From Guillardia theta CCMP2712 (lineage: Eukaryota; Protista; Cryptophyta): a DNA stretch of 64,000 nucleotides. The translations under genes and the position numbers were made by a program. Below the pieces are notes generated by a model. It saw only the letters and a list, made by a program, of their open reading frames with translations. It searched no databases and was not told the origin of the DNA. The stretch lies in NCBI RefSeq assembly GCF_000315625.1, contig NW_005434551.1, positions 128,228 to 192,227 of the forward strand. Reading direction: 5' to 3'. This document shows positions 481 to 63,925 of the stretch, piece by piece; position 1 is the first letter of the stretch; every line of letters starts with the position of its first letter.

Positions 481-939
481 GGTTATTGCCCACTCAGCAT
501 GACTGTGAACTTGACGTTGTATCATCGTATCTTGACTTGGATCTGCTGACATTCTTGTTTGTGTGACTTTCTGACGTCCGATGTAACGTACTATTTCAGA
601 AACTCGGGGGGAGGATGGAACGTATGCCAGCCGTGCCAGTCAGATAGCGCCGAGTTAACAAAAACTCTCCTGTAAACCAAGACGACTTACGTGGCGAGGC
701 GGCATGTAGTACGTGGGATGAAGAGGGGACTTTCCTAGCCGTCTTGCTAAGGTCCTCTCATGTCTGGATGCTTGGGTTTCACATCCTAGCATACAGTCTA
801 TCTCTCATGTGCTCCTCAATGCTGGTTTTTGTGTGCATTAAACTCGGTCTTGAGCAAAAACTGTCTTGTTACAACTAAGGTCGATGTGACGTCTGCGTGA
901 CTTTGGACTAGTACAAGTCTAACAAACTTGTATTCCGTC

Positions 940-1380
940 TACAGTGACTCACGGTGATCCGATCGGACTCGGACCGGTGAGCCCGGCCCCGGGCCGCCGG
1001 GCCGGGGCCCCGCCGGGCCGGCGGCCACCGTGCCAGGGCCCGGCGGCCTGAGCCCCGGCCGGTGACCTCACAGAGTCAGTGGGCCCGAGTCGGACCGTAC
1101 TACGCCGTCCTACCGACGGTCACGGTCCGGGCCACCGTTGCCCCGCCGGCCCCTGGCAGTGAGTCTGCCGCGCGCCGCCTGGCCCCGGGCCGCGGGCCGG
1201 ATCACACTGGTGACCTAGTAGGCTGCGGTGAGCGCTGCGGCAGTACTACCGTCTGTACCACGGCCCGGAGTCAGCGAACTGCCTCCCGGGCCCACCGCCA
1301 AGTCCGATCGGGAGGCGGCACTGACTGATGACGCGGCCTACTGCCAGTCACGGTAAATTCACAACCGTGACTAACAACGG
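940..1380. other. GC-rich intergenic island made of short palindromic words (CCGG, GGCC, CCCGGG, GTAC, GTGAC/GTCAC, GACTC/GAGTC)
   Basis: Abrupt GC rise; dense ccgg/ggcc/gactc words; no credible ORF. The same texture recurs at several other intergenic sites. Confidence 0.75.
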
Positions 1381-12160: not shown

Positions 12161-12477
12161 TCGGCTGTTTCGATCCGGATTTAAGATCTGAGGCAGTGTA
12201 AGTGCAAACATGAACAATGCAAACCTCCTCGTCTTCCGCGCCTCCAACTCAACTGGTCCCTATCTGAACAATTCTACCCTCCTTTCCATGCCCTCCCCTC
12301 CCCTCCCCTCCCCAACTCGATGACACTACAATGCGTCAATGTGATGACCTCATCTAGTTGACCCAACAATGCGTCCATGCCATGATTTGGGCACGTGAGG
12401 TTGGCCCTCAAACTTTGAGATTTCAAACTTTGTGTATTTCATCGAAGCTGAAAGTTCTGAACTTGCCAACTTATTAG

Positions 12478-12730
12478 ACTCAGTCTCGTTGGCGGCGCGG
12501 CCCGGAGTCCCCGGGCCTCCCCTCCCTTCTCCCCTCCCCGGGGGGCTGTCCGTACTGCCGTTCAACGGTTCGGTCCCCGGCCCGCCGCGCCACCGGGCGG
12601 TCGGCCCCGGGCGGGCCACCGGCGGGCCCAGTGACCGTACGGCCGGGCAAGAACCGCACCGTGACCTCCGTGGCGCGGTGACCGTACCGTTCCGTACCTC
12701 GGACCGCCGGTCACATCAGTAGTCAGTGGA
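12478..12730. other. GC-rich palindromic-word intergenic island
   Basis: Same ccgg/ggcc/gtac/gtgac texture as 940-1380. Confidence 0.7.
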
Positions 12731-12969
12731 GTATAACGCCAAGGGCAGCGCACATGATGGGTCGCTATCAGTGCTCTAGCTTCAAGCGCGGCCCACCGTG
12801 GCACGCGTCTAGGCAGGAGAAGCTACCTCGCTGCCCTCACTTGCACCTCAACTCAGCTTGTTGCTGTCAAACCAATAGGATGACATTGCGCCTCTCACCT
12901 TGAAGGCTTCACAAGCCAGTCGTCATGACGAGCGATATAAAAGACTCGGCGCGGACTTGCTATTTGTTT

Positions 12970-29369: not shown

Positions 29370-29869
29370 TCTGAATTACTTCAATTGGCGATCGATTTCA
29401 GTTTCACACGGAATCCCTTATTGTGAATACCTCAAAGAAGTACTTGAAGAGAGTTCTCACATCAAGTAGCTTGCCATTCCTGTCTGTCATTCAGACTGCT
29501 TGCAGGCTACACCTTGGCTCCACCTCGCCAAATCTATTCCCTCCTGCTTTCCCCTTCCTTTGCCTGCTGCTTCATCACCATCCCGCCGCTTGAGGTTTTC
29601 GTCTTCAATGACCCCTCTCTATATCAGTACCCCATGTCCACCACCCCACGCAATGTTTCCTTGACACAACGATGGTAAATGATAACCCCGTCATACTCAA
29701 GTAAATGATGTGAAATTATGTGGTAGGGTCATTACCCCACCCTATTATATTCACTACCCACAAGAAAATCCTTCGGAGCAGGAGCTTGTCATGTGTCACA
29801 GTGTCTCTCCACGATGGATGGGTAAAGATTACTCCGCCTCAGAGCGATGACTACCTTGATGTGAAAGGC

Positions 29870-30400
29870 AGGACGTGACTCACGATCACTCAATCCGGCA
29901 CTGTACGGTACGAGCGGCGGCCCGTCCTACTAGCGGCCGCCGGTTCACTCACTGCCGAGCCTCCGTCACTCGCGGCCGCCGCACTTGCCGCCTGGCCCAA
30001 CGCGATGACGGACCGTGCCATCGAGTCGGAACTCGGATCATGTCACAGTGTCATGATAGGCTCAGGTTTCAAGCCTAGTTTAGCAGTGACGGTCGGACGG
30101 TTCAACTCATTTGTCGGCCGGCATTGCCCCGGGGCCCGCGTTAACCGTTGAAACGGCGTGCGGTCGGGGCTCAGTCAAGTCCGACGGTCCTACCGTACAG
30201 GTACTTAAGTTGCACGGCTGACACGGTGCTGGGCGCGGCGCTGACCGGATTCGGAAGTCACACGAGTCGAGCCGCCCGGCCACCGTGGCACTCGTCCGGG
30301 GCCCGGGCCGGGGCCCGGCGGCCGGCGGGGCCGCGGGGCCGCTTGACTGAGCGGCGGACTCTCAGGACTCTGGAACCCGCCGGCTCATTTGTCCCGTGTT
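29870..30400. other. GC-rich palindromic-word island between divergent genes
   Basis: Same word texture; lies between the 5' ends of the giant gene (-) and the LRR gene (+). Confidence 0.7.
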
Positions 30401-30596
30401 AGGGCCATGGCAAGTTTGTCAGACGGTCTGTTGCCTGGTAGGCAGCGCAGTTGAAAGTTGGGCGACTAGATGCAAGCTTGCCAGTTGCCATGCCGCACTC
30501 ACCGTCATGGACTTGTCGCTGTTAAGCTCTTCTCAATGGCCGTGAATCATGCTTGAAAGCTGTTTATCAGTGTGAACACTTTCAAGTGCTGAAGAA

Positions 30597-37449: not shown

Positions 37450-38692
37450 CTTCATGGCTTCTCCTGAGTGGCTTGATTCACCAGGACCTGAGAGTTTTGC
37501 GCATCGAGAGCAAGCAGCAAATGCACCTTGAAACATCCCATAATTTCCACACCTTGGTCATTGGTCTTTGCCTTTATGAATAACTAAGTGTGCACTGAAT
37601 AGATACTGCACCAAGTGAGCTTTCAGATCAGAGGAGAGCATTTCCACTTTGGTCTCTTACGCTTCAAGTGAAACGCAACAAATTCCTGACAAATATTTTC
37701 ACTTTTTACCGACATCGAGTGATGAGCTTACATCTGATGGTTGAATTTCACGGACATAAACTTCCATATTACCTTGAATCAAACATGTCAGCATCACCGT
37801 GTCACTTGTTTAGCAATGTAGCAGTTCAATGTAGCAGTTATTCTTGCTTACAATATCTGGTCCTGATGATTCCTGTCTTCCCACGACCTTTAAATTCGAT
37901 CCTCTTTTCAGTGTGAGTATCAGTTCTAGCAGAATACTCAGTCGCACAATCAGACCTTCTTGATTTCAGATCGCCCAATCTTAATCTCGTCTACTAAAAG
38001 ATTGTCCGGATCCATACCTGCAGGGATATTCAAAAACACACAGTTCAATTCTTCACAAATCAACATTGAGAAACGGGATTCAACGATGTGCACAAGTTCA
38101 CCATACCGTGAATATTTGCAGCATTGAATTTGGCATCATGAATACAACGGCGAACTTTATCTGCTACCCTCTTGCGTGTCAAAGAAAGTTGCATGAGTGC
38201 TGCATCCACCCTTGCCCTGCGTACAAGTTTGCACACCAAGTTGAGCTTTTTCATTGATGTGCGGAATCGCTTCAGGACAGCTCTTGCACGTGGAAAATCG
38301 TGGTGCTCTGCATTGTGTCTTGAATTAGGCTTCTTCTCTACCAACGGAGTTGTCATTCCTACTGGCTCGGTTGAAGCTACCACGGCATCCGTAGCAAGCA
38401 ATCGTTTATGGACGATATTGGGCGTGCATACCCAAAGTCCCGATAGTTGCCTGTCAAGTGAGCTAACACTCGGTAAGGATCCTTCTCCCACTCGAGTCAC
38501 TGCACTTGCATTTGCACGAGGGAAGAAGTGTGAACTGGTGGGCGAAAGTCGCATCTTCACAGGTCTCACAAGAGACGAGAGGAGATGATTTGAAAAGAAA
38601 GAGAGATTATGAGGAGCTTGTGGTGGTCTCTTTCCCAGCATCCTCCAAGTCCCTAACTTCATTGGCTGTATCACCGCACGCGCGCTCCGCAT
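37450..38692 (-). CDS. MRPL22: Mitochondrial ribosomal protein uL22m, multi-exon
   Basis: Arg/Ser-rich presequence; ARAVLKRFRTSMKKLNLVCKLVRRARVDAALMQL..AKFNAANIHGM; next exons DPDNLLVDEIKIGR and RIEFKGRGKTGIIRTRYC. 3' end approximate. Confidence 0.85.
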
Positions 38693-38759
38693 GGCGCCCA
38701 CCGCGGCTGAAACCGTTACAATCAGGTTTGTAACCGTTCAAGCAGACTTTCAAGCACGG

Positions 38760-39265
38760 CTAGCGACTTAAAACTTTGAGTAAAGCTAGCGGCCGTCCGG
38801 CGACCATACGGTCCGATCACCCGGCACTTAAGCCAGTGCGGCCCGGGCCCCGGGGCGCCCGGGGGCTGCTAGCCTCAGGGCAACAGCGGTCGGTAACCAT
38901 TATGCCATTCCAGGCCCGGGCCTGCCCAGTTCCGGGGCCCGGGCCGTCAACGGTAACTTTGAGCAAAGAACTTCGAACGGTCACCGTCACCGTGCCGTGC
39001 GTGACCGTCACGGCGGTGGCACCCGGAGTTAAAATCAGTACGAGGACAATCAGGAGAGGCGAGGAGGCTTGACCCTGACCCAACTGTCGCACAGGCCAAA
39101 CGGCGAGAAGAGAAAAGACAGCGAGAACCAAACCCAATCCTGCCGACTGCTGTCCCCCAAACTTAACTGATACCTTCACTTAACGGAGTCAGTGAGGCCC
39201 GCGGCCGCGGCTCTGAAAGCGGTGACCCCGCGCCGGGCAGCCTGCTGATGCCGGCCACAGCATTC
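38760..39265. other. GC-rich palindromic-word island containing a MITE-like repeat copy
   Basis: Word texture as at other islands; contains copy A of the dispersed repeat. Confidence 0.7.
39028..39184 (+). mobile_element. Dispersed MITE-like repeat, copy A (least interrupted)
   Basis: GTTAAAATCAGTACGAGGACAATCAGGAGAGGCGAGGAGGCTTGACCCTGAC...CGGCGAGAAGAG matches the reverse complement of 57692-57790. The right end ACTGATACCTTCACTTAAC is an imperfect inverted repeat of the left end GTTAAGTTAAAAATCAGT seen in other copies. Confidence 0.7.
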
Positions 39266-39469
39266 CGTTGTACTACGGCGTTCGAAGAAACTATTTGCTA
39301 TTTACTATTTCGATCAAGTTCTTACAAAACCCTTTGTTGCCAACAATCTTCAAGACTCCGCGCCAAACACGATGCAGCAACATCCAAGGAGCTGCAAAAG
39401 TTCAAAATCTGACATACAAGGAGTTACAAGATGTTCAAAAGGCGATATGATGATATAGTACAATGCAAA

Positions 39470-42719: not shown

Positions 42720-44170
42720 TGAGATTCACGCCGGGCCGGGCCGCTTCACTCAGGACTGGGAGTTTCAACTTCGGAACGCAGCGGTGCAGTCAGCCTACCG
42801 CTGCACCGGCGGTGCAGCCGCTGAGCCGCTCAGTCAGCGCCGCTCGGACTCTATGCAAGGCTCGGATACTCACGGTGACTGCTCAAGTGCACCGCTCTCA
42901 GAGTCCCAGGCCGTTGAAGCCTTGCCGTCATCCGGTGTCAGGGAGTAGACTCTGCAGAATCACGAGTCATGATGATCTCAGCCTAGGCTGAGTGAAGCAG
43001 AGACTCGGCGAGTAGAAATATCACAGCGCTTTAGATAGCACGCACGGGAGCTGAAGAATGACCAAGTGGAAAGCTTAGAAGTGAGATTAAACTTCATGTT
43101 CACTTGAAGAACCGTTGCTACAAACACGGCACACAGGTCACTGAGAACTTCCGAACTCTTCCCTGTAGTTGTCTCGACCCCGGCCCCGCCGGGTTCTTGA
43201 CAGCGCATGCCGCAGTGTTCTCCGGGCCCCGGCACCAAAAGGATATTCGTGTTATAATCCGTTCCCGGGAAGTTCAAGCATAACAAGCCTCCTCGACTCT
43301 CGGAGGCTGATTGTCCTCGTACAGGCTGATTTTTAACTCACGCGGCTTCAAGTTTGATTAAAGATCGGACTGCTCAGGACGGTCGACTCTTTCAACCGAC
43401 ATCCCGCCGGCGCTGTTAGTACAGGCACCGGGCCGTTAGTACAGGCACCGGCGGGCCGTTCAAGGTTAGTACAGGCACCGGACCGTTCCGTGACGGTCAC
43501 GGTCGCCGGGACCGTGCGCCGCGGGTGGCCGCACGTGACAGTCACGTCACAGAGTCACAATGATGCGCCGGGCCCGGCCACTCGGAGACACATTGAACCC
43601 GGCGTTGAACACTCAGTGACCCGGCCCGCGCGGCGTGCACTGAGCCGGGCTGCGCTGACGGCCGGGACGGTGCCCGGCAGCCGCCGCGGCCGCCGGGCCG
43701 CCGGGCTTAGCCTGGCCCGGCCCCGGACCCCGGTAACGGCGCTTCAAGTCAGTGAACGCCGCCGGGTCAGTGACCCTTCAAGGCTTGAACGGGCCGGGCC
43801 GCCTCCGGCGGCGAGCCTCTGTTCACTGATCGGATCGATGATTCACGGTCCGAGTCACGTACCGCCGGGCCCAGGGTCACTCAGCGGCCAGGGGCCAGGC
43901 TCCGGCGTAGCGGCCTACAGCGGCCGGGCCACTGCCACAGCGGCCCGGTGCGGCGGTCACCGGGCACTCTCGGCCCACTTTTTCCCGTCGGATCGTTCGG
44001 GTGCCGGTGCCACGGTCCCCGACGGATCATCTCAGTCCCGGCCGCCGGATCCTGGCCTCGCCGCGGCCGGGCCGGGACGACCGTCATGATCCGAGCAGCG
44101 GCCCCGGCCCGGAGTGCCCCATGTGGGCGGCCGGCGGTCGGGCGGCAGCGCGGGCGCTGCCGGGCTTCGC
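42720..44170. other. Long GC-rich palindromic-word island (MITE copy B at 43284-43338; 17-bp triple repeat at 43415-43481)
   Basis: Dense ccgg/ggcc/tcag/gtcac words upstream of the CBM20 gene. Confidence 0.75.
43284..43338 (-). mobile_element. Dispersed MITE-like repeat, partial copy B
   Basis: CAAGCCTCCTCGACTCTC[GGAGG]CTGATTGTCCTCGTAC[AGGC]TGATTTTTAACT aligns with 57730-57775 apart from two short insertions and one substitution. Confidence 0.75.
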
Positions 44171-44181
44171 TTTTACTGCCA

Positions 44182-45850
44182 ATGATGTCCGCAATACAAT
44201 GGTTGGGTCGGCGAGGAGGACAAGGACGGAGAGTAGCACAATGCTCAGGGGCTCCTGTTCACATCGGCTATGCTTCTTGGCTACAGACCTTCGTCTCTAT
44301 CGCTTTGTTGCCCGTCATACTGTCTACTTCTCTTAAATCTATGGTGGAGAAGAGGAATATCTACAGGGACACTATGCAACGTCCAGGTCTTCTGCGACTG
44401 AGAGGAGGGCAAGATCGATCATCCCTGTTTGAGCCACACTTCATGCTTCGAGTTAAATGTGCAAACAGCAAATGGGGCGAGACAGGTTAGATATGTAGAC
44501 CAAACCTAAGATCAAGTTGACAATGTGCAGTGGGTGTTGTTGGAAATAGTGCCAGTCTAGGGACATGGAGCTCCCCCATGGCGATGCGATGTGATGGCTC
44601 GGTAAGTTCGACACCTTTGCGCCACATGACTGAACCTATCGTGTCCTCAAGTGGCCCCAATGGAGAGTGGAGCTGCCCTGCCATCAAGGAGTGGACGTGA
44701 TGGAGTATAAGTTCGTCAAAATGAATGATCATGGCCAAATCATTGAATGGGAGCCTGTGGAAAGCAATAGGTACTTTAGCAATGCTTCTTCAAATGAGAG
44801 TGAATTCGTTATTTTCTAGGCAACTTCTTCTCTTGAGCAATCTTGAGGGCAAGAGCGTAGACGATGGAGAGTATGGAAGAGTCTCTCGGATGGAAGTATG
44901 CACTTCGTGTCAATTGTTGCATGAATCAGGTTTACAGCTTAATTATCCCTTTCAGGCAATAATACAGGAACAAGTACGAGCGAAGGAGGCTGTTTACGCG
45001 GTCGATGAAGGTCTTTCTAATGAGCCAGTAGCTCCCTTACTTCTTTGCTGTCAGAAACGCAACCGCATGCCAATGACAAAGATGAAATTTTTTTGAAGAG
45101 AGCAAAGAAGAACAATGACAACCTCAAGGAGCAGGATGAGGAGGAGGCAGCCAGGAAGAAGGCGAAGGAGGAGGAGGAGGAGGCAGCCAGGAAGAAGGCG
45201 AAGGAGGAGGAGGAGGCAGCTAGGAAGAAGGCGAAGGAGGAGGAGGAGGAGGCAGCCAGGAAGAAGGCGAAGGAGGAGGAGGAGGAGGCAGCCAGAAAGA
45301 AGGCGAAGGAGGAGGAGGAGGAGGCAGCCAGGAAGAAGGCGAAGGAGGAGGAGGAGGCAGCCAGGAAGAAGGCGAAGGAGGAGGAGGAGGCAGCCAGGAA
45401 GAAGGCGAAGGAGGAGGAGGAGGAGGCAGCCAGGAAGAAGGCGAAGGAGGAGGAGGAGGCAGCCAGGAAGAAGGCGAAGGAGGAGGAGGAGGCAGCCAGG
45501 AAGAAGGCGAAGGAGGTTTCAGTAGGGGAAGTGTCGTCTGGAGCATCTTTGGATGAATCAGCTAGAATGTATAGTTCAAAGCAAGAGATGTCCTTGGTAA
45601 CTTCCTTGTCGATGTGTATTCAATTTGCTTCTGATTATTTTGGCTTAGTTTCATGATGAAAGGTTGAAGGAGGAGGTGGTAAGATTACTTGCTTCCTGCA
45701 TGCCATGTGAATTAATTTTGCCCCTCTTCCGATTGGCAAGGAAAACTCCCATGCGGTTAGAGCTTTTGATTCATCGATTAGAATGACCGTCTTAAGACGT
45801 ATTCTAGGATGAAGTCAGGGTGGCCGAGTTACAGAGACAAAAGATTGAGG
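44182..45850 (+). CDS. CBM20 (starch-binding) domain protein with N-terminal hydrophobic segment, LRLRGG motif and C-terminal EK-rich repeat, multi-exon
   Basis: ...LLRLRGGQ..FMLRVKCANSKWGET / VGVVGNSASLGTWS..AMRCDG / WPQWRVELP / EYKFVK matches the CBM20 pattern; downstream (AARKKAKEEEE) repeats. 3' end approximate. Confidence 0.7.
45135..45515 (+). repeat. Coding minisatellite, 11 units of 33-36 bp (AARKKAKEEEE[E])
   Basis: GCAGCCAGGAAGAAGGCGAAG(GAG)4-5 tandem units. Confidence 0.95.
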
Positions 45851-46588: not shown

Positions 46589-49092
46589 CTAGTCGAGAGC
46601 CAGTACTACAAGAAGATCCCCTGGTTGCCACTTCCTTGGCACACCCTTATCACTTGGGTTCAATACTGTCTTGCATTCAGGAAATGTCTCATTGACAGAC
46701 TTGAATCCAAGCAAAACTTCTCTGCGTTCTCTCACTCTCACAGATAAATCCCAGAACGAGAATTTATCCGACCTCTTGATATCGACGTAGTCTTCGACTT
46801 GGCGCAAGTATAATTCAGTTCCGTCTGCTGAAAGCAGCTCCGATAGGATCATGTTCAAGTCACGGCATTCAGCAACTTGTGCAATAACAGCACTTACGAT
46901 TTGATTGGACATCACGTAACCCTTGCAATTCACAACACTTAATAAACTTCGAGTTCGACTGTCAAGAATTTCACTAATCGGATCCTTTGCCCGGAGTGAG
47001 TTGGCCTCATCAATTTTTCCTTCAGCGATTAGCTCTTGCTTGCGTTTCTCCAGTAATTTTGACTGAATGTCTTGAATAATCAACAAACTGGCCAATGATC
47101 TACTGTCTGACGTCTGAATATTTGTTTGATCGGCATGATCAGCCAAAATCAACAGAGAATCAAATTGGTCTACAGTGATTTCATCCCCCGAATAAAAAGA
47201 GTTACCATCCCTATCCACACGGACTTCTTTGATAACCATCAGATCACGTCTGATAATAGGATTTCCGACTGCATTCTTGATCACAAGATTCTTACATTTG
47301 AGCTCATCCTTGTTTCCCTTATCTTTCAAAAGCTCTACTCGCTCCTCGACTGGAACCGTATTGAACAGCCATAACTCACTGCCAGAAGTGACATATGCAT
47401 CCAGTTGCATGATCATATCTGCCATGTCACGGCGCCATCCACAGAAAAGCATTTTTTCCGTTTTCATCGGCAGCCTCTGCGGTACAGAGGAAACGTTCTT
47501 TTTCACTTTGTATGTACCATCATTCACGGTGTACGAATCGTTATCCTCCGCGAGAACTATGATCTGATCACCTTGTTCAATTCGCAAAGTGCTCAGAGGA
47601 TTCAAGAGAACTCTTCCATCAACGCTCTTTTTTACCCCAATCGGAATTGCGTCATCAAATCTGCAGATTATGTCGCTGAATTGAAGCCCCTCAAGCTGTG
47701 GCCAATTTTCCAAATAAAACTCTGCACCTTCAAATCCCATCAAGCTTTCCAAGATGTATGCAAGCCCTGGCTGACGCGCGCATTGTATCATCAACCTTCC
47801 AATAATGTCGTGTGCAACGATGACTTCCGCAATGTCCACGGCGACAAGATTGACCAATTCTCGGTTATCTACGTCTTGCATCTCCACAACAACATGGCCT
47901 GCAAGGTTTTCCATTCCTTTTAGCGACAGAACCTGCCTGACCATTCTCGAATCAGACTCATCTGGAGAAATATTGTCCGAAGCAAGCATAATGATACTCC
48001 TTGCAGAAAGCACACCAACTTTCAACAGGTCGTATTGTACCAAAGGGTTCCCACTGCGGAAAATCACTTCTGTACCCATCAGATTCAACGCATTTTCACG
48101 ACTTTCGATAGCAGATTCCAATGTATCTTCCAAATCATTTTTGTCGTGCTCTGCGAGAACTACAATAACTCCACCTCCTTCACTCTCATTCGCAAATGCA
48201 ATCTGCTGGATAATTGGAAGGCTTTTATCGTTCCATCCCAGCATCAAGGTATGTCCACATTCTATCACTCTACTCTTGCCTTTCTTCAGATTATCGACTT
48301 GCTCTCCAATAGATTCTGAGATGATTCCGATCATCAACGCGAAAACCAACATCCCGCCAATCGTGACACAGAAGGCAATAATTCTCTCAAGAGTTCCTTC
48401 AGTGTCTGCGTGGGTACCTGGGTCAGCAACATATGTCCACGACTTCCAAAGAGTAACAGATATGTCCTCTCCAGTCGATATGAGTAAAATGAATCCACCG
48501 AGTACAATCAGGACAAACGTAACCATTAGTAGCAATACTGGCTTTGCGAATTCACTATTTGTGAAGTGATAATCTAGCCGATATTGCAATAATTCGCTGA
48601 GCGTGAATTGCATGGAAGTTACCTTTTTTTTGCGGATAAATGTGCAGTATTCGTTGTAGAGGAACCTCGAAATGTAGCCGCAACCAGAAAATATAAGCAA
48701 CATTGTAAGGTACGGGGGTCCAGCCTCCATCTCCTTTGGCTGGTTTTCACAATTCCTCTCTGGAAGCAATCTATCGTTGTGTTTTGATGATTTGTCTTCG
48801 ACCAGTCTTTCGTTCTCTAATTCAAGCTTGGCAAGTCGATCATTTAGCAACGCATTTGAATAATATGCTCCTACGACAACAGCTGTGTACGCAACTATCA
48901 AACAAGAAAGTACAAAGAAAACTCTTGGTTTCTCAAACATGAGTCCTCCAATCTGTAATTTGGAGAAAAACGAAAGGAAACTCGTCACAGGTCGCAGAAG
49001 TGAAACTACACTCATACCTCTGATTGAAGCGATTGTTTCTTAGGGTCATTCTTTTCTGATTTGCAGTCGGCATCAACTTGAAAAGAAGCCAT
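46589..49092 (-). CDS. CASTOR/POLLUX/DMI1-like cation channel (pore + two RCK domains)
   Basis: WKSWTYVADPGTHAD pore; IGGMLVFALMIGIISESIGEQVDNLKKGKSRVIE.GHTLMLGW; ESEGGGVIVVLAE; VIFRSGNPL; VAHDIIGRLMIQCARQPGLA; FEGAEFY; SDSRSLASLLIIQDIQ; ISEILDSRT. Exon 1 from ATG 49092 joins in phase 0 via a GT-AG intron 49017-48953. Confidence 0.92.
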
Positions 49093-49719
49093 CACCCTTC
49101 GCCCCCTGTACGAGGATGCTAGCAGCGAGACAGGAGAGGAAACCTGAGGCAAATGACAATCAGGACGAGCTATGGAATAAGAGGATGATTGTCCGAGTTG
49201 GATGGAAATCAACCAGACATTTTGGATTTGAGTGAGAAAATCTTGAAACAAATCAACATTGTCATGTAATGCTCAACGACATAAAACAGGCATGTAGCTG
49301 ATGACTGTGTGAACTCACTTGTGTGTTGCTACTGCGATCTTTTTCTTGCTTTTTTTTCTTGCTTTTTTTTCTTCTTCTTTCCCCCTCACGCTAATAACAA
49401 TCACGCGTTTCTAACACGATGTTCTCGGGGTGGGGTGTATACCCCACCCCTGCCAATCAGAGTACCCCCTAAAATTAAAGAAAACCGATCAGAGGCCACA
49501 GGTAGAGCTTGGAGGGTGGGTGTCCTGACATGTTTGAGTGGGCAGGGTAGGGTCAGCAGGGACGTGTTTCATCAAAGTGGGTGGGTACTAGAAGCCCGCG
49601 GCACTCCGCTGGTGAGCTGTCACCCCCTCCTACCCCACCCGTCCGCAAGGCTACAAGAAAGGAGTACAAGACTGTGTGGGTACCCCTCCACCACCCTTTA
49701 AGTTAAACACCGTACTGTA

Positions 49720-50490
49720 CTTCACTCAAAGTTAAGTTAAAAATCAGTACGTGAAGGAGAGGCTGACTCGGAGACTCGAGCCTGAGGCTCCCGAGCCGGG
49801 CCCCGGCGAGCGGCCTGACCCTGCAGAGGCTGCCCGTCACACTCAGACTGCTCTTTACTCAAAGCTCGGTGGGCTACCGAGCTTTGAGTAAAGCCTAGTA
49901 ACTGATACCTTCACTGCCCGGCAGGCTTACCAAGTTCGCCGGCTTGACCCTGACCGGGCCGGCGTACGGTACCGTCAGTTGATCGCCGAGCGGCGGCAAG
50001 TGACTGAAAAGATCTGATGATCGGACAGTGAGAACTCGGAACCGTAACCCGGCCGCAGGCTTATCCCGGCTGCCGACTGCTCAGTGTCCCCCCCCAAACT
50101 TAACTGATCATGGCGCCCGGCCCGGGCCAGATACCTTCACCGTCAGCCCCGTGTACGGTACATGATCACCGGGCCGGGCCTCCCCCCTCCCGGGCCCCGA
50201 GTGGGCCAGCCCGGCCGCGGTCACGGTTGAACCTTTGTTCAAAACTCACTGAGTTGACTGACTCAGCGCACGTACGGTCTAACTTGCGGCCCTTTACTCA
50301 CTCAGCGGCCGCTGGAAAAAAAAAAACAGTGACGTCGGAGAGTAGAGGAGGCTTGACCCTGTGCGACATACGGCGAGAAGAGCCTCGGAGAAAAGACAAC
50401 CCGGCAGAACCAACCCTCATCCTACTATCCGATTCCCGATCGGACACACTACTGCTGTGACCGTACGGTAACCTTGAGTCAAACTTGGGA
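49720..50490 (+). mobile_element. Two heavily interrupted copies (C 49720-50140, D 50292-50490) of the MITE-like repeat within a GC island extending to ~50900
   Basis: Collinear blocks of copy A (AAAATCAGTACG, GGCTTGACCCTGACC, GAAAAGA, TGCCGACTGCT, CCCCAAACTTAACTGAT, ATACCTTCAC) are separated by inserted GC-rich words. Confidence 0.7.
49853..49893. repeat. Perfect 18-bp inverted repeat with 5-nt spacer
   Basis: CTTTACTCAAAGCTCGGT-GGGCT-ACCGAGCTTTGAGTAAAG. Confidence 0.95.
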
Positions 50491-51001
50491 AATAGGCCGG
50501 CGCGCTGAGCTCCGCGGCCCGGGCCGCCGCCCGCCGGCGCCCTCCGAGCCGGCCCTGAGTGCAGATGAAGGTCACAAGGTTTCTTACAATTGTGACCGTA
50601 GCACTGCCGGGCTGCGGCGGCCGCGTGAGCGGCGACTCCGATACGGTGCTCGGATGATCCCGGCGATAGTATCCCGGTCGGATGCCGGGGCCAGCCAGTG
50701 AATTTAACCGTGACTTCAAACGATGTCTTTGCACGGGGCCGGCCGGGCCACCCGGTGAGTAGCCCAGGCCCTCAGCCGGGCTCGGACTCGGTGGCCGCGT
50801 GCCACGGTGACCCGGCGCCGTCGGACTCCCGGCAGGCACGGTCCGATCCGGCGGCCGGGGCGCCGGCCGGGTCACGGGTCTGGCATGCGGCACAGACTCC
50901 GACATACAAGCCTCTGAAACTCGCTGTTACATCCCTTTCTCATTGTATGCTGAGTTCTGAATCGACACTGCACAAACCTTGAATCAAGGGCTTGAATGAT
51001 T

Positions 51002-52204
51002 CTAGCTCTCTTCTTGCAGCTTGAAGCCTGAGGATGCCAAATTTGAAAGTTCCCTACAGAAGGAGTGAAGTGGAAATCCCATCACCTGCCACAAAGACTC
51101 GTGACACTACAACCAGAGAAAAGCAAGAAGGAATTAGGATTCGGATAGACACGGAGCTAGACTTAGAATAACAGTATGGCCGACAAGTCGCTATGAGCGT
51201 ACATTGTAATAGCATCCACGTATTCCTTTCACAAAACATCCACCGAGAGATTGGATCCCATATGCTCCAGCTTTATCCATGGGTTCGCCTGAATCAATGT
51301 ATGCCTGCAATATGATAAGTCGTAATAATGTTTCAATTTGCCATTGTTTTCACATTGATATCAGCATCTGTCAAATCAGCGAAAGAAACGCTCGTTTCCT
51401 CTACGAAACAATGCTCCTTAAGCTCTTCATTCTCACAATATCTTGGAAACGAAGGTGAGGAAGTCTTGACTTGTAGCAACAAGGCATATCACATTAGCGT
51501 CACTCCTGTGTAAACTTTATGCTCATTCCCGCTCAACATCCTTAGCATGCGGAATGCATGTGCATTGTCCTGTCCAGCTTGTTGAGAAAAAGAACAGCGA
51601 TGATTAGCTCATACAGATGGTTTTTCAAGAATTTCTCCAGCGTAGACGACCACCTATTCGTCAATACTCGTTTCAAATACAGTCATCACAAATATCGCAA
51701 ATATGACCGTATCACCACCAACAACCATGCCTGGTCGATCTCCAAAGGAGCAGAGCCTGGTATAAATTCACAAGAGGCTATCTGGCATGGGGCTTTGCAG
51801 CACAAGCGAATCATACAAATCTACCTTTTCCAAACCTCCAATGATTTTTGCCTTGCGTTTTCTATCACATAACCTTGGGGCGAATATTTTGATTTGTCAA
51901 GGTTCTCCTCGAAGGTCGATGGAATTACTCTGACATTCAATCCAAGAATGTTTGATAAGATCTCCTTTCTACGAGGTGAGTTTGAAGCTAGAACGAAATC
52001 TACCTGTTTCAAACTTTTCAAACGATCGAGGATCATTGAGACTTCTCCTGTCTTTGTTGTACAACGGATTGAACAGGACAATCGTGGGAAATGTCCAGAA
52101 GGATTCAGAGCAAAGGGGAGCACAGAAGGGACGTGAGCTAGAATAGAAGCAACGGTCAGCAAGGACAACTTTGCGATGCTAGAGCGCCCCGGCTGTGTCC
52201 TCAT
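51002..52204 (-). CDS. maf: Maf/YhdE-family nucleoside triphosphate pyrophosphatase with possible bipartite (plastid) targeting leader, multi-exon
   Basis: [14 protein letters not shown]; [11 protein letters not shown]; ENARQKS; later exons [41 protein letters not shown]; stop at 51002-51004. Confidence 0.9.
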
Positions 52205-53748
52205 CGCACCACTTATTAGTGCCGTTATAAAAATAATTCTGGTGCTTTGAGTGAAAGGTATCAACTGGTGGTGATCGCTGATGAGTGTACTCTACCGCGG
52301 CCCGGCCGGTCATATTAATAATAACAAATATTTAAAAGAGGTATATATTCTATATATTTATAAAAATGATACGTTAAAAAATTTTTAAAAGAGTTTTGAC
52401 TTCAAATAGGTGGTAGGCTAGAGGAAGTTGGTAGAAACGCCAATCGTAGTCCGAAGATTTCAGAAAATAACATCTACAATTGTTTAGTACGTGTGGAGTA
52501 ATAATCAGATAAAACTCAATTTATTATCCATTAACGTCTGGGCGGGCCCGAAAAGGTTGGGCAGTCGTAGCCGGAATGGGGGAGGCGAGGGGCAGGGGTA
52601 CTTGGAACCGATGATGAGGTAGGTAGTTGCAGTGAGGGGTGGTCCGCACAGGGGTAAAACCTATCAAAGGCGTCGCAGGGGTCAAACGCTGGGGGTGGAA
52701 TAACCTTTCACTCGGTTAATAGGCCTTTCCTCAAGATAGAGGTTTATCAAGGGTTATACCTAGAATTGGCTAATAATAGATTTATTGGATATGGAGGGTT
52801 GTAGAGAATGGGGTGGGGTGGGATGACTCATCATAATGGACGGTGGTGCTTGACGATCGTGGGGTGGAGGGACGATGAGACGTAAAGGCTGGGTTGTAAG
52901 AACGGGTTATGCACCTGAAGGTAGGGGGTGTGTATTCCTCGGTACCAATTGCACAGAGGGGTAAGGTGGTGGTGAAGAGAAAAGGAAGGTGGGGTAGTTT
53001 GTTCATGCCACCAGGGTGGGTGAAACAACGTTCCGCCGGCGGATATTCGCTATGCAGAGGATTGAAGGAGATACCGTAGGACGACCATGATGCAGGAATG
53101 AGGACAAAGCGTGGACAACCATACGAGATTGATATGTAAGGTTGTATTTGCAAGATCGAGCAGGTTCGGATCGATATAGTCAAAGACAGAGCGAAAGAGA
53201 ATGGTCGAACAATGTAGGTCAGGAATGTGGAATCTTAACCTAAAGAAGATTCATTTCCTTGGTATGATCAGATTTTGGTGCAAGGGACTTCTTATATTTT
53301 AGATAGGTATGTAAAGAATTTCGAAACAAGATTTATGTGCAATAAGTGCCATCGTAGGGTCTGAACGAGTCGATATGCTTCAGAAACGAAAGCTTGTTTT
53401 GCTGTGTAAAATCTAGGTTGGCTGATGGGCATTTATGATAATTGGATATGCTAGCATTTCCCATGATTGTGAGGTTGATATGCAAGAGCTTGTGATCAGC
53501 TTGTGCACAAATCACGATTTGTGAAAATCGAAGTTTTGACGTTCACAATGCTCTCGTCTTTCATTTTGTATTCGTGGCTAGGAATGATCAAGACTTTTTG
53601 GCAGTCATCGGAATTTGCTCAAGCTGGTCAATATTTTTGCAGGCGGTGACGACAGCTGATAGAATGTATGTCCTTCAAAATTGGATTATTGAAGCATCTG
53701 ATTGTGTCATCAATACAGAAAGAAGCGGCCCTACAATTTTTTGCAAAG

Positions 53749-57535: not shown

Positions 57536-57691
57536 GGTAGAGGGGCAAAGACAGAGACAGGGAGAATCGGAGTGAGAGAGAAGTAGAAAGGCTGCAAGTA
57601 TCAACCGATGTCTACCTACATCGCTCCCACTGACTCCGACGGGCCGGCCGGGCAGTCAAAGGAGGATGAGATTTACTCTCATAGTTTATTG

Positions 57692-57790
57692 CTCTTCTCG
57701 CCGTTTGGCCAGTGCGACAGTGTCAGGGTCAAGCCTCCTCGACTCTCCTGATTATCCTCGTACTGATTTTTAACTTAACTTTGAGTAAAG
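57692..57790 (-). mobile_element. Dispersed MITE-like repeat, copy E including the terminal CTTTACTCAAAGTTAAGTTAAAAATCAGT end
   Basis: Reverse complement of 39028-39112 plus the terminal motif also seen at 49720. Confidence 0.75.
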
Positions 57791-58148
57791 AAGTTTATCA
57801 GGGTGGTACCTGAGAGCCAACCGCCGTTCTTCCAGGCGTTAGTCCGTCTCGGAGTCCCCGGGGGGCTGGGCTGGAACCGCTAACCCGATTGAGTGAGCAT
57901 GCCAAATCAACAAATCAGGCTGAGGCATTGGCAGCCAGATGATTTCAACATGCCGGGGGCCGAAGCCTTCAACATCACTGAAGCCTTCCGGGCCGGGCCG
58001 CGGCCGTCGGGCCGCCCCGGCGGCCCGCCGATGGCACGGATCATAGTAACTTCGAGTCTGGATGGTCTCCGTCCTACTTTCCTGTGCAGTACGGTGCCAT
58101 GATTGTCCACGTGAAACCGCAGGGCAGGGCCCGGGCAGTCCGCCGACA

Positions 58149-61100
58149 ATGACTCAATGACTCTATGACTCAATGACTCAATGACTCCATGACTGAGCCT
58201 CTTACGCCGGGTGACTCGGTAGGCCTGAGGCAAAGGCTCAATGACTCAATGAATTATGGTGACTCAGTTGGCCTGAGGCCTGAGGCCACGGCTAGACCGT
58301 GTGACTGAATGAGCGCCGGACAGACTCAGTACTGACTCAATGACGCAATGACTTCATGACTCAATGACTCAATGACTCTATGACATGACTCCATGACTCC
58401 ATGACTCAATGACTCTATGACTCTATGACTCTATGACTCAATGACTCTATGACTCTATGACTCTATGACTCTATGACTCTATGACTCTATGACTCTATGA
58501 CTCAATGACTCTATGACTCTATGACTCTATGAGACTCTATGACTCAATGACTCTATGACTCTATGACTCAATGACTCAATGACTCAATGACTCTATGACT
58601 CTATGACTCTATGACTCTATGACTCAATGACTCTATGACTCAATGACTCTATGACTCCATGACTGAGCCTCTTACGCCGGGTGACTCGGTAGGCCTGAGG
58701 CAAAGGCTCAATGACTCAATGAATTATGGTGACTCAGTTGGCCTGAGGCCTGAGGCCACGGCTAGACCGTGTGACTGAATGAGCGCCGGACAGACTCAGT
58801 ACTGACTCAATGACGCAATGACTTCATGACTCAATGACTCGTACGGTGACTCGGTAGGCCTGGTTTCAGCAAGACCATCTCCGTCAGCATGAAGTCCACG
58901 GTGCTGAAGAGGGAGCAGCTGCCGGCGTCCTGCAGTGCAAAGGTGCAGTCCTGCGAGGAGGAGCAGCTGCAGATCTCACTCATCGCCTCGGAGAACATTG
59001 CGACCGCCCTGCGATCCTCCCCAGTAATGCATCTCCCGGACGGGGCAGGCCCACCAGTCTGCGACCCCGTTGCCCGAGGGGCTGTAGTCGCTGCGCGAGT
59101 CGATGTCGTAGGTCTTGAGCCAGTCCATGGTCTCGGTGCTTGCAGCCCTCGGCATGCACTTGGGGAGGAGGTTGTAGGTGGAAGAGGCCCTGTCTCTGGG
59201 TGCAGGTGTCGTTGCTCCTTATCCCCGGCTTGCAGAGGTTGTTGGAAGTTCCTGCTGACGGCATTGAGCGTGATCCACAGAGGGAGGATAGTGCCAAAGG
59301 TGGTAATCTGCTTCGCCAGCAGTGGTGCACCAGCCGGAACGCGTCCTTGTGGGTGTAGCCAAGGGCCTTGCTGCTGCATGAGGTCAGGCCGATCAGGTGT
59401 TGCGGTCCGATCCGTCTTGTTGCTAAGGATGACGGAGATGGCGTGTACGAGCACGTCGGCCATCCTCACGTTACAGGTCCCTCCCAGGTGGTGTTGACAT
59501 CCAGTTCGTTATCGAGGAAGCGAGCCGTGAAACTAGGATGACGTCGAGGCTNNNNNNNNNNNNNNNNNNNNNNNNNNNNNNNNNNNNNNNNNNNNNNNNN
59601 NNNNNNNNNNNNNNNNNNNNNNNNNNNNNNNNNNNNNNNNNNNNNNNNNNNNNNNNNNNNNNNNNNNNNNNNNNNNNNNNNNNNNNNNNNNNNNNNNNNN
59701 NNNNNNNNNNNNNNNNNTGGGGCTCGTTGGCGCTCTCGATCGATGCGTAGCCCAGCATGAGGTTGTAGAGGTTGTCGTTCACCAGTGTGGCGATGGTGTC
59801 TACGCTCCTCCTCGCGTAATCGAACCTGTAGTAGTTGCACAGGCTCTGCAGGTTGACGGTGTAGCAGAACATGTGGGCCAGGGGTGCGACCATGAGGTCC
59901 ATCCAGCAGGGTATCCCGTCGTTGAGCTCGCGGTCGGTGGGGTTGAGTTGCCGTTGTTCGAGATCCGGTTGATCTTCCGGCTCTCCACCGAATGACTCTA
60001 TGACTCTATGACATGACTCCATGACTCCATGACTCAATGACTCTATGACTCTATGAGACTCTATGACATGACTCTATGACTCCATGACTCAATGACTCAA
60101 TGACTCTATGACATGACTCCATGACTCCATGACTCAATGACTCTATGACTCTATGACTCTATGACTCTATGACTCTATGACTCTATGACTCTATGACTCT
60201 ATGACTCTATGACTCAATGACTCTATGACTCTATGACTCTATGACTCTATGACTCTATGACTCTATGACTCAATGACTCTATGACTCTATGACTCTATGA
60301 GACTCTATGACTCAATGACTCTATGACTCTATGACTCAATGACTCAATGACTCAATGACTCTATGACTCTATGACTCTATGACTCTATGACTCAATGACT
60401 CTATGACTCAATGACTCTATGACTCCATGACTGAGCCTCTTACGCCGGGTGACTCGGTAGGCCTGAGGCAAAGGCTCAATGACTCAATGAATTATGGTGA
60501 CTCAGTTGGCCTGAGGCCTGAGGCCACGGCTAGACCGTGTGACTGAATGAGCGCCGGACAGACTCAGTACTGACTCAATGACGCAATGACTTCATGACTC
60601 AATGACTCGTACGGTGACTCGGTAGGCCTGGTTTCAGCAAGACCATCTCCGTCAGCATGAAGTCCACGGTGCTGAAGAGGGAGCAGCTGCCGGCGTCCTG
60701 CAGTGCAAAGGTGCAGTCCTGCGAGGAGGAGCAGCTGCAGATCTCACTCATCGCCTCGGAGAACATTGCGACCGCCCTGCGATCCTCCCCAGTAATGCAT
60801 CTCCCGGACGGGGCAGGCCCACCAGTCTGCGACCCCGTTGCCCGAGGGGCTGTAGTCGCTGCGCGAGTCGATGTCGTAGGTCTTGAGCCAGTCCATGGTC
60901 TCGGTGCTTGCAGCCCTCGGCATGCACTTGGGGAGGAGGTTGTAGGTGGAAGAGGCCCTGTCTCTGGGTGCAGGTGTCGTTGCTCCTTATCCCCGGCTTG
61001 CAGAGGTTGTTGGAAGTTCCTGCTGACGGCATTGAGCGTGATCCACAGAGGGAGGATAGTGCCAAAGGTGGTAATCTGCTTCGCCAGCAGTGGTGCACCA

Positions 61101-63925
61101 GCCGGAACGCGTCCTTGTGGGTGTAGCCAAGGGCCTTGCTGCTGCATGAGGTCAGGCCGATCAGGTGTTGCGGTCCGATCCGTCTTGTTGCTAAGGATGA
61201 CGGAGATGGCGTGTACGAGCACGTCGGCCATCCTCACGTTACAGGTCCCTCCCAGGTGGTGTTGACATCCAGTTCGTTATCGAGGAAGATCCACGCAGAG
61301 GATGACGTCGAGGCTCCCCGCCGTGAACCCCGTAACGTCCACCGTGTCGTGCAGCAGGATGCACTGCACCCACCACTTCATCGGGATCTCGATCTGCGAG
61401 GCGTCGCTGAAGGCGTACAGGGTCGTGTGCGGGTAGAAGAAGCTAGCCACCCCGGGCTGGAGGTCGTAGGCGTACCAGCCCTGGGGCTCGTTGGCGCTCT
61501 CGATCGATGCGTAGCCCAGCATGAGGTTGTAGAGGTTGTCGTTCACCAGTGTGGCGATGGTGTCTACGCTCCTCCTCGCGTAATCGAACCTGTAGTAGTT
61601 GCACAGGCTCTGCAGGTTGACGGTGTAGCAGAACATGTGGGCCAGGGGTGCGACCATGAGGTCCATCCAGCAGGGTATCCCGTCGTTGAGCTCGCGGTCG
61701 GTGGGGTTGAGTTGCCGTTGTTCGAGATCCGGTTGATCTTCCGGCTCTCCACCGAATGACTCTATGACTCTATGACATGACTCCATGACTCCATGACTCA
61801 ATGACTCTATGACTCTATGAGACTCTATGACATGACTCTATGACTCCATGACTCAATGACTCAATGACTCTATGACATGACTCCATGACTCCATGACTCA
61901 ATGACTCTATGACTCTATGACTCTATGACTCTATGACTCTATGACTCTATGACTCTATGACTCTATGACTCAATGACTCTATGACTCTATGACTCTATGA
62001 GACTCTATGACTCAATGACTCTATGACTCTATGACTCTATGACTCAATGACTCAATGACTCTATGACTCTATGAGACTCTATGACTCTATGACTCTATGA
62101 CTCTATGACTCTATGACTCAATGACTCTATGAGACTCTATGACTCTATGACTCTATGACTCAATGACTCAATGACTCAATGACTCTATGACTCTATGACT
62201 CAATGACTCAATGACTCAATGACTCAATGACTCAATGACTCAATGACTCTATGACTCTATGACTCTATGACTCTATGACTCAATGACTCTATGACTCAAT
62301 GACTCAATGACTCCATGACTGAGCCTCTTACGCCGGGTGACTCGGTAGGCCTGAGGCAAAGGCTCAATGACTCAATGAATTATGGTGACTCAGTTGGCCT
62401 GAGGCCTGAGGCCACGGCTAGACCGTGTGACTGAATGAGCGCCGGACAGACTCAGTACTGACTCAATGACGCAATGACTCTATGACTCAATGACTCGTAC
62501 GGTGACTCGGTAGGCCTGGTTTCAGCAAGACCATCTCCGTCAGCATGAAGTCCACGGTGCTGAAGAGGGAGCAGCTGCCGGCGTCCTGCAGTGCAAAGGT
62601 GCAGTCCTGCGAGGAGGAGCAGCTGCAGATCTCACTCATCGCCTCGGAGAACATTGCGACCGCCCTGCGATCCTCCCCAGTAATGCATCTCCCGGACGGG
62701 GCAGGCCCACCAGTCTGCGAGCCAGTCCATGGTCTTCCTGGCGCAGGGGTCCACACCGGAGAGGGAGGGGGCGGTGCTTGCAGCCCTCGGCATGCACTTG
62801 GGGAGGAGGTTGTAGGTGGAAGAGGCCCTGTCTCTGGGTGCAGGTGTCGTTGCTCCTTATCCCCGGCTTGCAGAGGTTGTTGGAAGTTCCTGCTGACGGC
62901 ATTGAGCGTGATCCACAGAGGGAGGATAGTGCCAAAGGTGGTAATCTGCTTCGCCAGCAGTGGTGCACCAGCCGGAACGCGTCCTTGTGGGTGTAGCCAA
63001 GGGCCTTGCTGCTGCATGAGGTCAGGCCGATCAGGTGTTGCGGTCCGATCCGTCTTGTTGCTAAGGATGACGGAGATGGCGTGTACGAGCACGTCGGCCA
63101 TCCTCACGTTACAGGTCCCTCCCAGGTGGTGTTGACATCCAGTTCGTTATCGAGGAAGATCCACGCAGAGGATGACGTCGAGGCTCCCCGCCGTGAACCC
63201 CGTAACGTCCACCGTGTCGTGCAGCAGGATGCACTGCACCCACCACTTCATCGGGCTCTCGATCGATGCGTAGCCCAGCATGAGGTTGTAGAGGTTGTCG
63301 TTCACCAGTGTGGCGATGGTGTCTACGCTCCTCCTCGCGTAATCGAACCTGTAGTAGTTGCACACGCTCTGCGAACATGTGGGCCAGGGGTGCGACCATG
63401 AGGTCCATCCAGCAGGGTATCCCGTCGTTGAGCTCGCGGTCGGTGGGGTTGAGTTGCCGTTGTTCGAGATCCGGTTGATCTTCCGGCTCTCCACCGAATG
63501 ACTCTATGACTCTATGACATGACTCCATGACTCCATGACTCAATGACTCTATGACTTCATGACTCTATGACTCTATGACTCTATGACTCTATGAGACTCT
63601 ATGACTCAATGACTCAATGACTCAATGACTCAATGACTCAATGACTCAATGACTCTATGACTCTATGACTTCATGACTCAATGACTCTATGACTCAATGA
63701 CTCTATGACTCTATGACTCTATGACTCTATGACTCTATGACTCTATGACTCTATGACTCTATGACTCTATGACTCTATGACTCTATGACTCAATGACTCT
63801 ATGACTCTATGACTCTATGACTCTATGACTCAATGACTCAATGACTCAATGACTCAATGACTCAATGACTCTATGACTCAATGACTCTATGAGACTCTAT
63901 GACTCTATGACTCTATGACGCAATG
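58149..63925. repeat. Higher-order tandem array: ATGACTC(T/A/C) octamer satellite + ~150-180 bp conserved linker + ~1.0-1.15 kb GC-rich insert; period 1768/1888 bp
   Basis: Linker GACTGAGCCTCTTACGCCGG... starts at 58191, 58661, 60429 and 62317. Inserts at 58841-59990, 60609-61754 and 62497-63496. Satellite blocks at ~58340-58660, 59991-60428, 61755-62316 and 63497-63925. Confidence 0.95.
60609..61754 (-). pseudogene. Frame-broken fragments of an unidentified Cys/Trp/Tyr-rich high-GC3 gene (repeated 3x in the array)
   Basis: Minus-strand reading with strong C/G-ending codons (e.g. LNDGIPCWMDLMVAPLAHMFCYTVNLQSLCNYYRFDY...PMKWWVQCILLHD); the preferred frame changes several times and there is no start outside the satellite. 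Confidence 0.6.

Follow-up and report, generated by a model that had tools for sequence, protein, structure and literature searches.

The span 49720-50490 of the window (the whole 64-kb stretch of Guillardia theta DNA that was analysed) consists mostly of three decayed relics of the 3' end of one LINE, all lying in the same orientation. We regard it as an even bet that these decayed relics were later riddled by a genome-wide micro-insertion process that writes palindromes, and that the cause of this process is a hairpin-type processing of broken DNA ends. An earlier note on this DNA had proposed that a process of repeated insertion writes the GC-rich island in which the span lies; the insertions are indeed iterative and GC-enriching, but the island is made for the most part of the three retrotransposon relics and was not written from nothing.

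The window is nuclear DNA of an intron-poor eukaryote, in which the long ORFs correspond to an EF3-type factor, a Castor/Pollux-type channel, TIG-domain giants and an LRR protein, and in which GC-rich islands of 0.4-1.3 kb sit between ORFs of about 41-45% GC. A tRNA scan and an Rfam scan of the 64-kb window gave no matches, which rules out an organelle or RNA-gene feature. For the genome-wide searches we used an assembly of 87,145,349 bases in 669 contigs.

The repeat from which the earlier note started is the 3' end, read in reverse, of a non-LTR retrotransposon of about 3.65 kb. The family looks recently active, since two full copies (L032:945-4588, G000:C4; L033, G000:C22) are 99.8% identical over 3,645 nt and an ORF of 1138 amino acids is intact (L032:1106-4522, minus strand, opposite to the repeat as read). 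This ORF matches RVT_1 (E 4.7e-8, 33.4 bits against a cut-off of 29.6), which is the sole Pfam domain reported, and a self-comparison of a full copy with its flanks revealed neither long terminal nor inverted terminal repeats. A search with copy A of the window gave 713 first-look candidates, of which 40 were scored, mostly with 92-100% identity; all copies have one boundary in common and the far end is variable. Genome-wide, the 3'-terminal anchor has 1011 matches and an anchor 144 nt further in has 256, a decrease expected from 5' truncation. A site-specific LINE was ruled out, as the flanks at the common 3' end vary from copy to copy. Many of the genomic 3' ends of the element are merely 25-60 nt long, and one copy (L031, G000:C39) has an internal deletion of about 1.9 kb. 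With more than 1,000 copies in the genome, the family is a ready, polarised ruler with which the insertion process can be measured genome-wide.

The copies of the element in the window, and the palindromic features that lie in them, are the following:

39027..39224, plus strand: copy A, a young 5'-truncated LINE 3' end in the short reference state, 97-100% match to the common 3' end
43284..43338, minus strand: copy B, a LINE 3' end fragment with the clean inserts GCCT and CCTCC
49721..49869, plus strand: heavily decayed LINE 3' end relic, reference positions 1-172, local alignment score 103.5 against 33±6 for shuffled sequence
49853..49893, no strand: perfect inverted repeat (arms 18 nt, spacer 5 nt) formed from the LINE terminal word CTTTACTCAAAG and the CTCGGT that follows it, read from the sequence
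49941..50140, plus strand: copy C, LINE 3' end, reference positions 55-165, score 101 against 33.5±5.5 for shuffled sequence (maximum 51)
50012..50022, plus strand: ATC-T-GAT-G-ATC, an instance of the insertion grammar inside the first insert of copy C
50321..50468, plus strand: copy D, LINE 3' end relic, reference positions 19-172, score 109.5 against 35.7±5.7 for shuffled sequence
50380..50390, plus strand: GAG-C-CTC-G-GAG, the canonical 8-nt insertion in copy D (triplet, C, inverted triplet, G, triplet)
57652..57789, minus strand: a further LINE 3' end copy, 87% identical

Copies A to D all align to one LINE 3' end, and the observation that otherwise collinear copies of the repeat contain extra short words is thus borne out: the six inserts that had been listed for copy C are present in its alignment (49941-50140), and those of copy B, on the minus strand, and of copy D, CCTCGGAG, were also recovered. 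At least eight micro-insertions have lengthened copy C to 200 nt, from 111 nt in the reference. The relic at 49721..49869 stands at the start of its GC island. The inverted repeat at 49853-49893 resembles a fold-back of the element end, on a larger scale than the micro-insertions. Sequencing depth spikes at 49667-49863 because the element end is present in many copies.

We read the extra words as derived insertions, and not as sequence that the short copies have lost by deletion, since the short state is that of the young, near-identical copies, including the two full-length ones; the case that the earlier note had named as refuting its reading, a consensus that contains the words, is thus not borne out, which speaks for that reading. 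At the site of the CAGT insert, 77 of the 79 genomic copies that retain the surrounding anchors have no insert, and the CAGT itself is unique to copy C. Across the island, the window agrees letter for letter with contigs of three further, independent sequencing runs, so that an assembly error is ruled out. Runs from 2011 that are filed under a different organism label are likewise identical to the window (47500-53400 compared). In a freshwater metagenome there is one low-coverage contig of a close relative, in which the adjoining Castor/Pollux-type channel gene has about 2.7% substitutions; over copy C, this contig shows 26 gap letters and only 6 substitutions, which suggests that indel turnover at copy C may be ongoing.

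For the count of small insertions and deletions, 91 distinct genomic copies with an exact match to a 17-nt anchor (reference positions 144-160) were used, and the 160 nt upstream in each were aligned to a reference that is a real genomic copy of the element, not a consensus. An event was called small at 30 nt or less and clean when flanked by six exact bases on either side. Polarised in this way against a genomic copy, insertions exceed deletions: there are 51 clean insertions and 25 clean deletions, 12 of these deletions being 1-nt changes in A-runs. All small events together comprise 318 insertions (1,900 nt) and 176 deletions (972 nt), counts that the gap-friendly alignment inflates in the most scrambled copies, and stricter gap scoring gives 176-199 insertions against 122-128 deletions, so that the ratio in the 91 copies is 1.4-2x. 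The inserted bases are 60% GC (73% in clean events) and both the deleted bases and the reference are 48% GC. The net growth that the earlier note had inferred is not shown by these copies, the length between two anchors being greater in 23 copies, smaller in 18 and equal in 18, with a mean change of -5 nt; length is balanced because the deletions are fewer but larger.

The number of insertions per copy rises with the number of substitutions (rho 0.47, p 2e-6), and the insertions therefore accumulate after integration. Small insertions per substitution amount to 0.81 in the gap-friendly alignment and to about 0.15-0.17 under stricter scoring, in which substitutions are about 3x more numerous. 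The load is strongly overdispersed (index of dispersion 7.3 for insertions and 2.2 for substitutions), with some copies showing 2-4 substitutions and 10-13 insertions and others 5 substitutions and no insertion, so that hot copies exist. Across the 91 copies, the insertion load correlates neither with GC nor with palindrome density in the 400-500 nt next to the copy; a locus-restricted process is not supported here, and the comparison of load with neighbouring palindrome density does not demonstrate a link from the insertion process to the location of the islands. Insertions occur all along the element and peak only mildly, at positions 44-55 and 68-79, and a single hotspot at the element's own palindrome was ruled out on this ground. 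Those longer than 30 nt were considered as MITEs and rejected, as they have no MITE-like ends and look like stacked GC palindromes or nested element pieces. At one locus (L050, G000:C5:1001293-1001612) two element 3' ends lie head to tail, the inner one insert-rich and the outer one almost clean.

The inserted words obey a rule that can be written X -> X-C-rc(X)-G-X, where X is a target of 2-3 nt that is kept on both sides, the gain being 8 nt when X is 3 nt long. In the one-sided forms, which also occur, a C comes next after the ancestral arm in the 5' to 3' direction, and behind it stand 3-6 adjacent bases copied in inverted orientation. Eleven of the 51 clean inserts have exactly the general form X-p1-rc(X)-p2-X, where shuffled inserts would give 1.9; nine of these 11 full events have C as p1, and three have C in place of G as p2. 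A further 7 clean inserts are one-sided (2.6 expected) and 3 are tandem duplications (0.7 expected). The remaining 30 of the 51 have no simple one-step fit and may be nested events, which is an assumption on our part. Typical examples are CAG-C-CTG-G-CAG, GAG-C-CTC-G-GAG (found twice, and again in copy D), CTCGAC-G-GTCGAG, and CAGGG beside CCCTG. That the inserts often are the reverse complement of adjacent bases had been noticed on a few copies and is confirmed on this larger set, where at least 4 bases match the reverse complement of the immediate flank in 30% of inserts (13.5% when permuted) and at least 5 in 16% (4% when permuted), the observed mean match being reached in none of 300 permutations.

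The pivot base of these palindromes shows polarity with respect to the ancestral arm. With this arm on the 5' side, 11 of 15 events have C as pivot, and with the arm on the 3' side, 14 of 23 have G; in other words, C is the pivot once the strand is read so that the ancestral arm precedes it. Twenty-five events obey this polarity and 9 break it (p 0.009), and the pivot is C or G in 34 of the 38. It is not the complement of the neighbouring ancestral base, the next base being A both at position 108 of one copy (L088) and in copy D. Genome-wide, the C..G form is 4-5.5x commoner than its mirror image (G..C) for the three triplets counted, with 407 matches to CAC-C-GTG-G-CAC against 101, 901 to GAG-C-CTC-G-GAG against 239, and 127 to ATA-C-TAT-G-ATA against 23. 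Even ATA, an AT-rich target, thus acquires a C and a G, and this accounts for the rise in GC. Matches to the CAC and GAG forms also occur in pairs 8 nt apart, which shows repeated events at one site. The sequence of each insert is set by its local target, X differing from site to site, and the rule holds at GAG, CAG, GGC, CCC and ATA; a mobile palindromic GC cluster or MITE was ruled out because the insert varies in this way with the local target.

The same signature fills the seven GC-rich islands of the window, for which observed and expected numbers of C/G-pivot palindromes are given (no strand assigned):

841..1380: GC island, 14 against 2.1 expected
12401..12860: GC island, 11 against 1.4 expected
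29781..30520: GC island, 12 against 2.0 expected
38661..39280: GC island, 7 against 1.8 expected
43321..44320: GC island, 20 against 4.2 expected
49741..51000: GC island with the span 49720-50490, 22 against 3.6 expected
57801..58200: GC island, 8 against 1.1 expected

The seven islands described earlier are therefore real, each of them, scored singly, being enriched 4-8x in such palindromes, and no enrichment was found in the GC-rich coding stretches of the window. As a negative control we used the GC-rich coding repeat at 17721-19840, which contains no C/G-pivot palindrome at all; this is a tandemly duplicated region coding for proline and cysteine inside the TIG-domain ORFs, and it is interrupted by assembly gaps (N runs) at 18100-18199 and 18999-19098. 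Six of the islands (4,620 nt) together contain 97 palindromes whose arms are 4 nt or longer and whose spacer is 1 nt, against 25.6±5.1 expected, with C as pivot in 42, G in 44, A in 5 and T in 6. Enrichment is mild for spacers of 0, 2 and 4 nt, there is no excess for a spacer of 3 nt in these six islands, and coding DNA shows no excess of 1-nt-spacer palindromes. The full form X3-C-rc(X3)-G-X3 occurs 19 times in the islands against 0.22 expected, other pivot pairs being few. When the rule is iterated on GGC or CCG it yields strings such as GGCCGCCGGGC, which are the commonest words of the islands, and the view that the inserts (60-73% GC) are iterative and share the vocabulary of the islands is upheld. 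At two island edges (1345-1380 and 50565-50600) we observed short hairpin-like words with longer AT-rich loops, CACGGT..ACCGTG and GGTCACAA..TTGTGACC.

In the scheme that we favour, the three LINE 3' ends would have landed first and would then have been riddled by the genome-wide process. DNA would break, and a hairpin-type intermediate would form at the broken ends, be it a covalently closed hairpin whose tip carries one extra C or the product of a turn-around copy. Opening of the hairpin at a distance of a few bases from its tip would leave short complementary tails, through which the ends would be rejoined. The full form could arise in a single step if both ends carried X, both formed C-tipped hairpins and the rc(X) and X tails annealed to give X-C-rc(X)-G-X, and the one-sided forms could result from the loss of one side. 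Were two one-sided events to follow each other, the pivots would be CC or GG, and these are in the minority. Iteration of the rule on its own products would then build up the palindromic, GC-rich vocabulary of the intergenic islands. Hairpins formed by transesterification can be as tight as a 1-nt spacer. More tentatively, with a degree of belief clearly short of even, we suggest that the lineage may possess a specific DNA-end-processing activity, such as a hairpin-forming nuclease or recombinase or a very active transposon, that writes C-pivot palindromes at breaks at a rate comparable to that of point substitution and, by iteration, makes GC-rich islands.

An alternative that we consider unlikely, with perhaps a minor chance of being right, is that the insertions are the excision footprints of a cut-and-paste DNA transposon with a 2-3-bp target-site duplication and C...G termini, whose flanking hairpins would carry the terminal C at the tip, so that each cycle would leave X-C-rc(X)-G-X. 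Such an element would produce the whole grammar in one step, with the duplicated X, the constant C and G and the joining through rc(X)/X tails, and would account for the excess of the C..G form over the CC and GG forms expected from sequential one-sided events. There is precedent in Ac/Ds (hAT) excision, the footprints of which are P-nucleotide palindromes centred on a single base and derived from resolved flanking hairpins (PMC5873905; PMC5499845), and hAT, Transib, MULE and RAG all make hairpins on the flanking DNA (PMC5499845). The likeness to Ac/Ds extends to the short palindromic insertion, the retained flank, the single-nucleotide pivot, the microhomology joining and the variable arm length, and, in our full events, to a direct target duplication flanking the scar. 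The pivot, however, is a constant C here (G on the other strand) and the complement of the bordering base in hAT footprints, and the duplicated target is 2-3 nt long here and 8 there; in our full events the direct duplication that flanks the scar varies between 2 and 3 nt, and in the one-sided events it is absent. The scale is also far larger here, events coming near the substitution count in the gap-friendly alignment and whole islands being built. As for a resident element, the CACTA (PF02992) and hAT (PF05699) transposase profiles had no match in the genome, in searches run without a positive control; a screen of 360 kb brought up no TIR family that recurs with a 3-bp duplication, and in 14.5 kb of element copies none of the roughly 300 insertions is an occupied site. 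The P nucleotides of V(D)J coding ends, where RAG hairpins are opened off-centre, similarly add an inverted copy of the terminal bases to an end that is kept, but they are even palindromes without a pivot and belong to somatic cells and immune loci.

We hold it equally improbable that the words stem from replication template switching or from a snap-back of the polymerase-theta type, in which a nascent 3' end copies a few bases of the complementary strand and then returns. Both mechanisms are documented (PMC5453318, PMC4912351, PMC2943611), and the excess of inserts that reverse-complement adjacent bases, together with that of tandem duplications, is what they would produce. They are disfavoured because a 1-nt spacer, dominant here, is too tight for fold-back, intramolecular priming, a spacer of 3 nt showing no excess in the islands, and because the neighbouring base does not serve as template for the constant C/G pivot, as the copy L088 and copy D show. 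Short template-switch mutations as described by the four-point model (PMC5453318; PMC8794818) do resemble our events in that perfect inverted repeats arise in one step from adjacent sequence and can form hairpins de novo; they are, however, fully templated, without a fixed pivot or a 2-3-nt direct duplication, and are rare relative to substitutions, whereas here an untemplated C or G is constant and events approach the substitution count in the gap-friendly alignment. That all new bases be templated, the hallmark of a template switch, is not what we found, the C/G pivot being left unspecified by the flanks. Polymerase-theta end joining likewise makes flank-templated, sometimes inverted insertions at repaired breaks, among them snap-back insertions (PMC4912351; PMC2943611; PMC5728401), but it usually deletes flanking bases and involves loops of several nucleotides, whereas in the present events the flanks are kept, or even duplicated, around a 1-nt spacer. 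The earlier proposal of fold-back or templated repair was therefore close to the mark, and what it leaves aside, an untemplated constant C pivot and a 1-nt spacer, fits the hairpin-type end chemistry better than a plain template switch.

It is very improbable that the words were made by the reverse transcriptase of the element at integration, or that they mark older subfamilies and are not later mutations. Template jumping and the addition of untemplated bases are known from reverse transcriptases, and some inserts do recur at one site across copies (CCCCGGG at 141, CAGCCTG(G/C) at 77, GC at 79). Against this, the insertion count climbs with substitution age, one word type is found at different GAG sites along the element, the signature fills island DNA outside the element and is absent from GC-rich coding DNA, and the metagenome relative (one low-coverage contig) differs by indels in copy C.

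The idea that the pattern is an artefact of alignment noise, of assembly error or of short copies that are deletion derivatives has next to no chance of being correct and is already largely refuted: the most scrambled copies do align uncertainly, but the clean events, with their six exact flanking bases per side, show the same pattern, the contigs of the three other runs match, and the short state is held by young copies.

Among described systems, the mobile GC clusters and other palindromic elements known from organelle genomes, such as the yeast mitochondrial GC clusters (PMC4478555), are comparable in that GC-rich palindromes accumulate in intergenic DNA and inflate it. They differ in being discrete mobile sequences with a consensus of their own, whereas the local target dictates the insert here, and in residing in an organelle and not in a nuclear genome. 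In the literature we found no published description of a C-pivot insertion process, and nothing relevant on GC-rich palindromic islands in cryptophyte nuclear genomes.

Should the rule hold, most of the odd intergenic sequence of this organism would be one repetitive repair signature and would not stem from selection or mobile elements. It would also be a natural case in which small insertions exceed small deletions and GC is gained, both against the usual mutational biases. The scar is readable, as the fixed pivot base and its polarity constrain the chemistry of the enzyme and put the agent within reach of genetics; cultures of the organism exist, and so do ChIP-seq data under its species label. 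If an end-processing activity of the kind suggested above does operate in this lineage, it would represent a new mutational route to regulatory-region sequence and to satellites with an 8-bp period.

A satellite of this kind lies at 58149-63925, where octamers form units such as ATGACTCA. Its A-variant reads TGA-C-TCA-A-TGA, with an 8-nt period and a C pivot like those of the micro-insertion rule and with A in place of G as second pivot. The genome-wide rule matches that lie exactly 8 nt apart suggest that octamer arrays could start by way of the rule.
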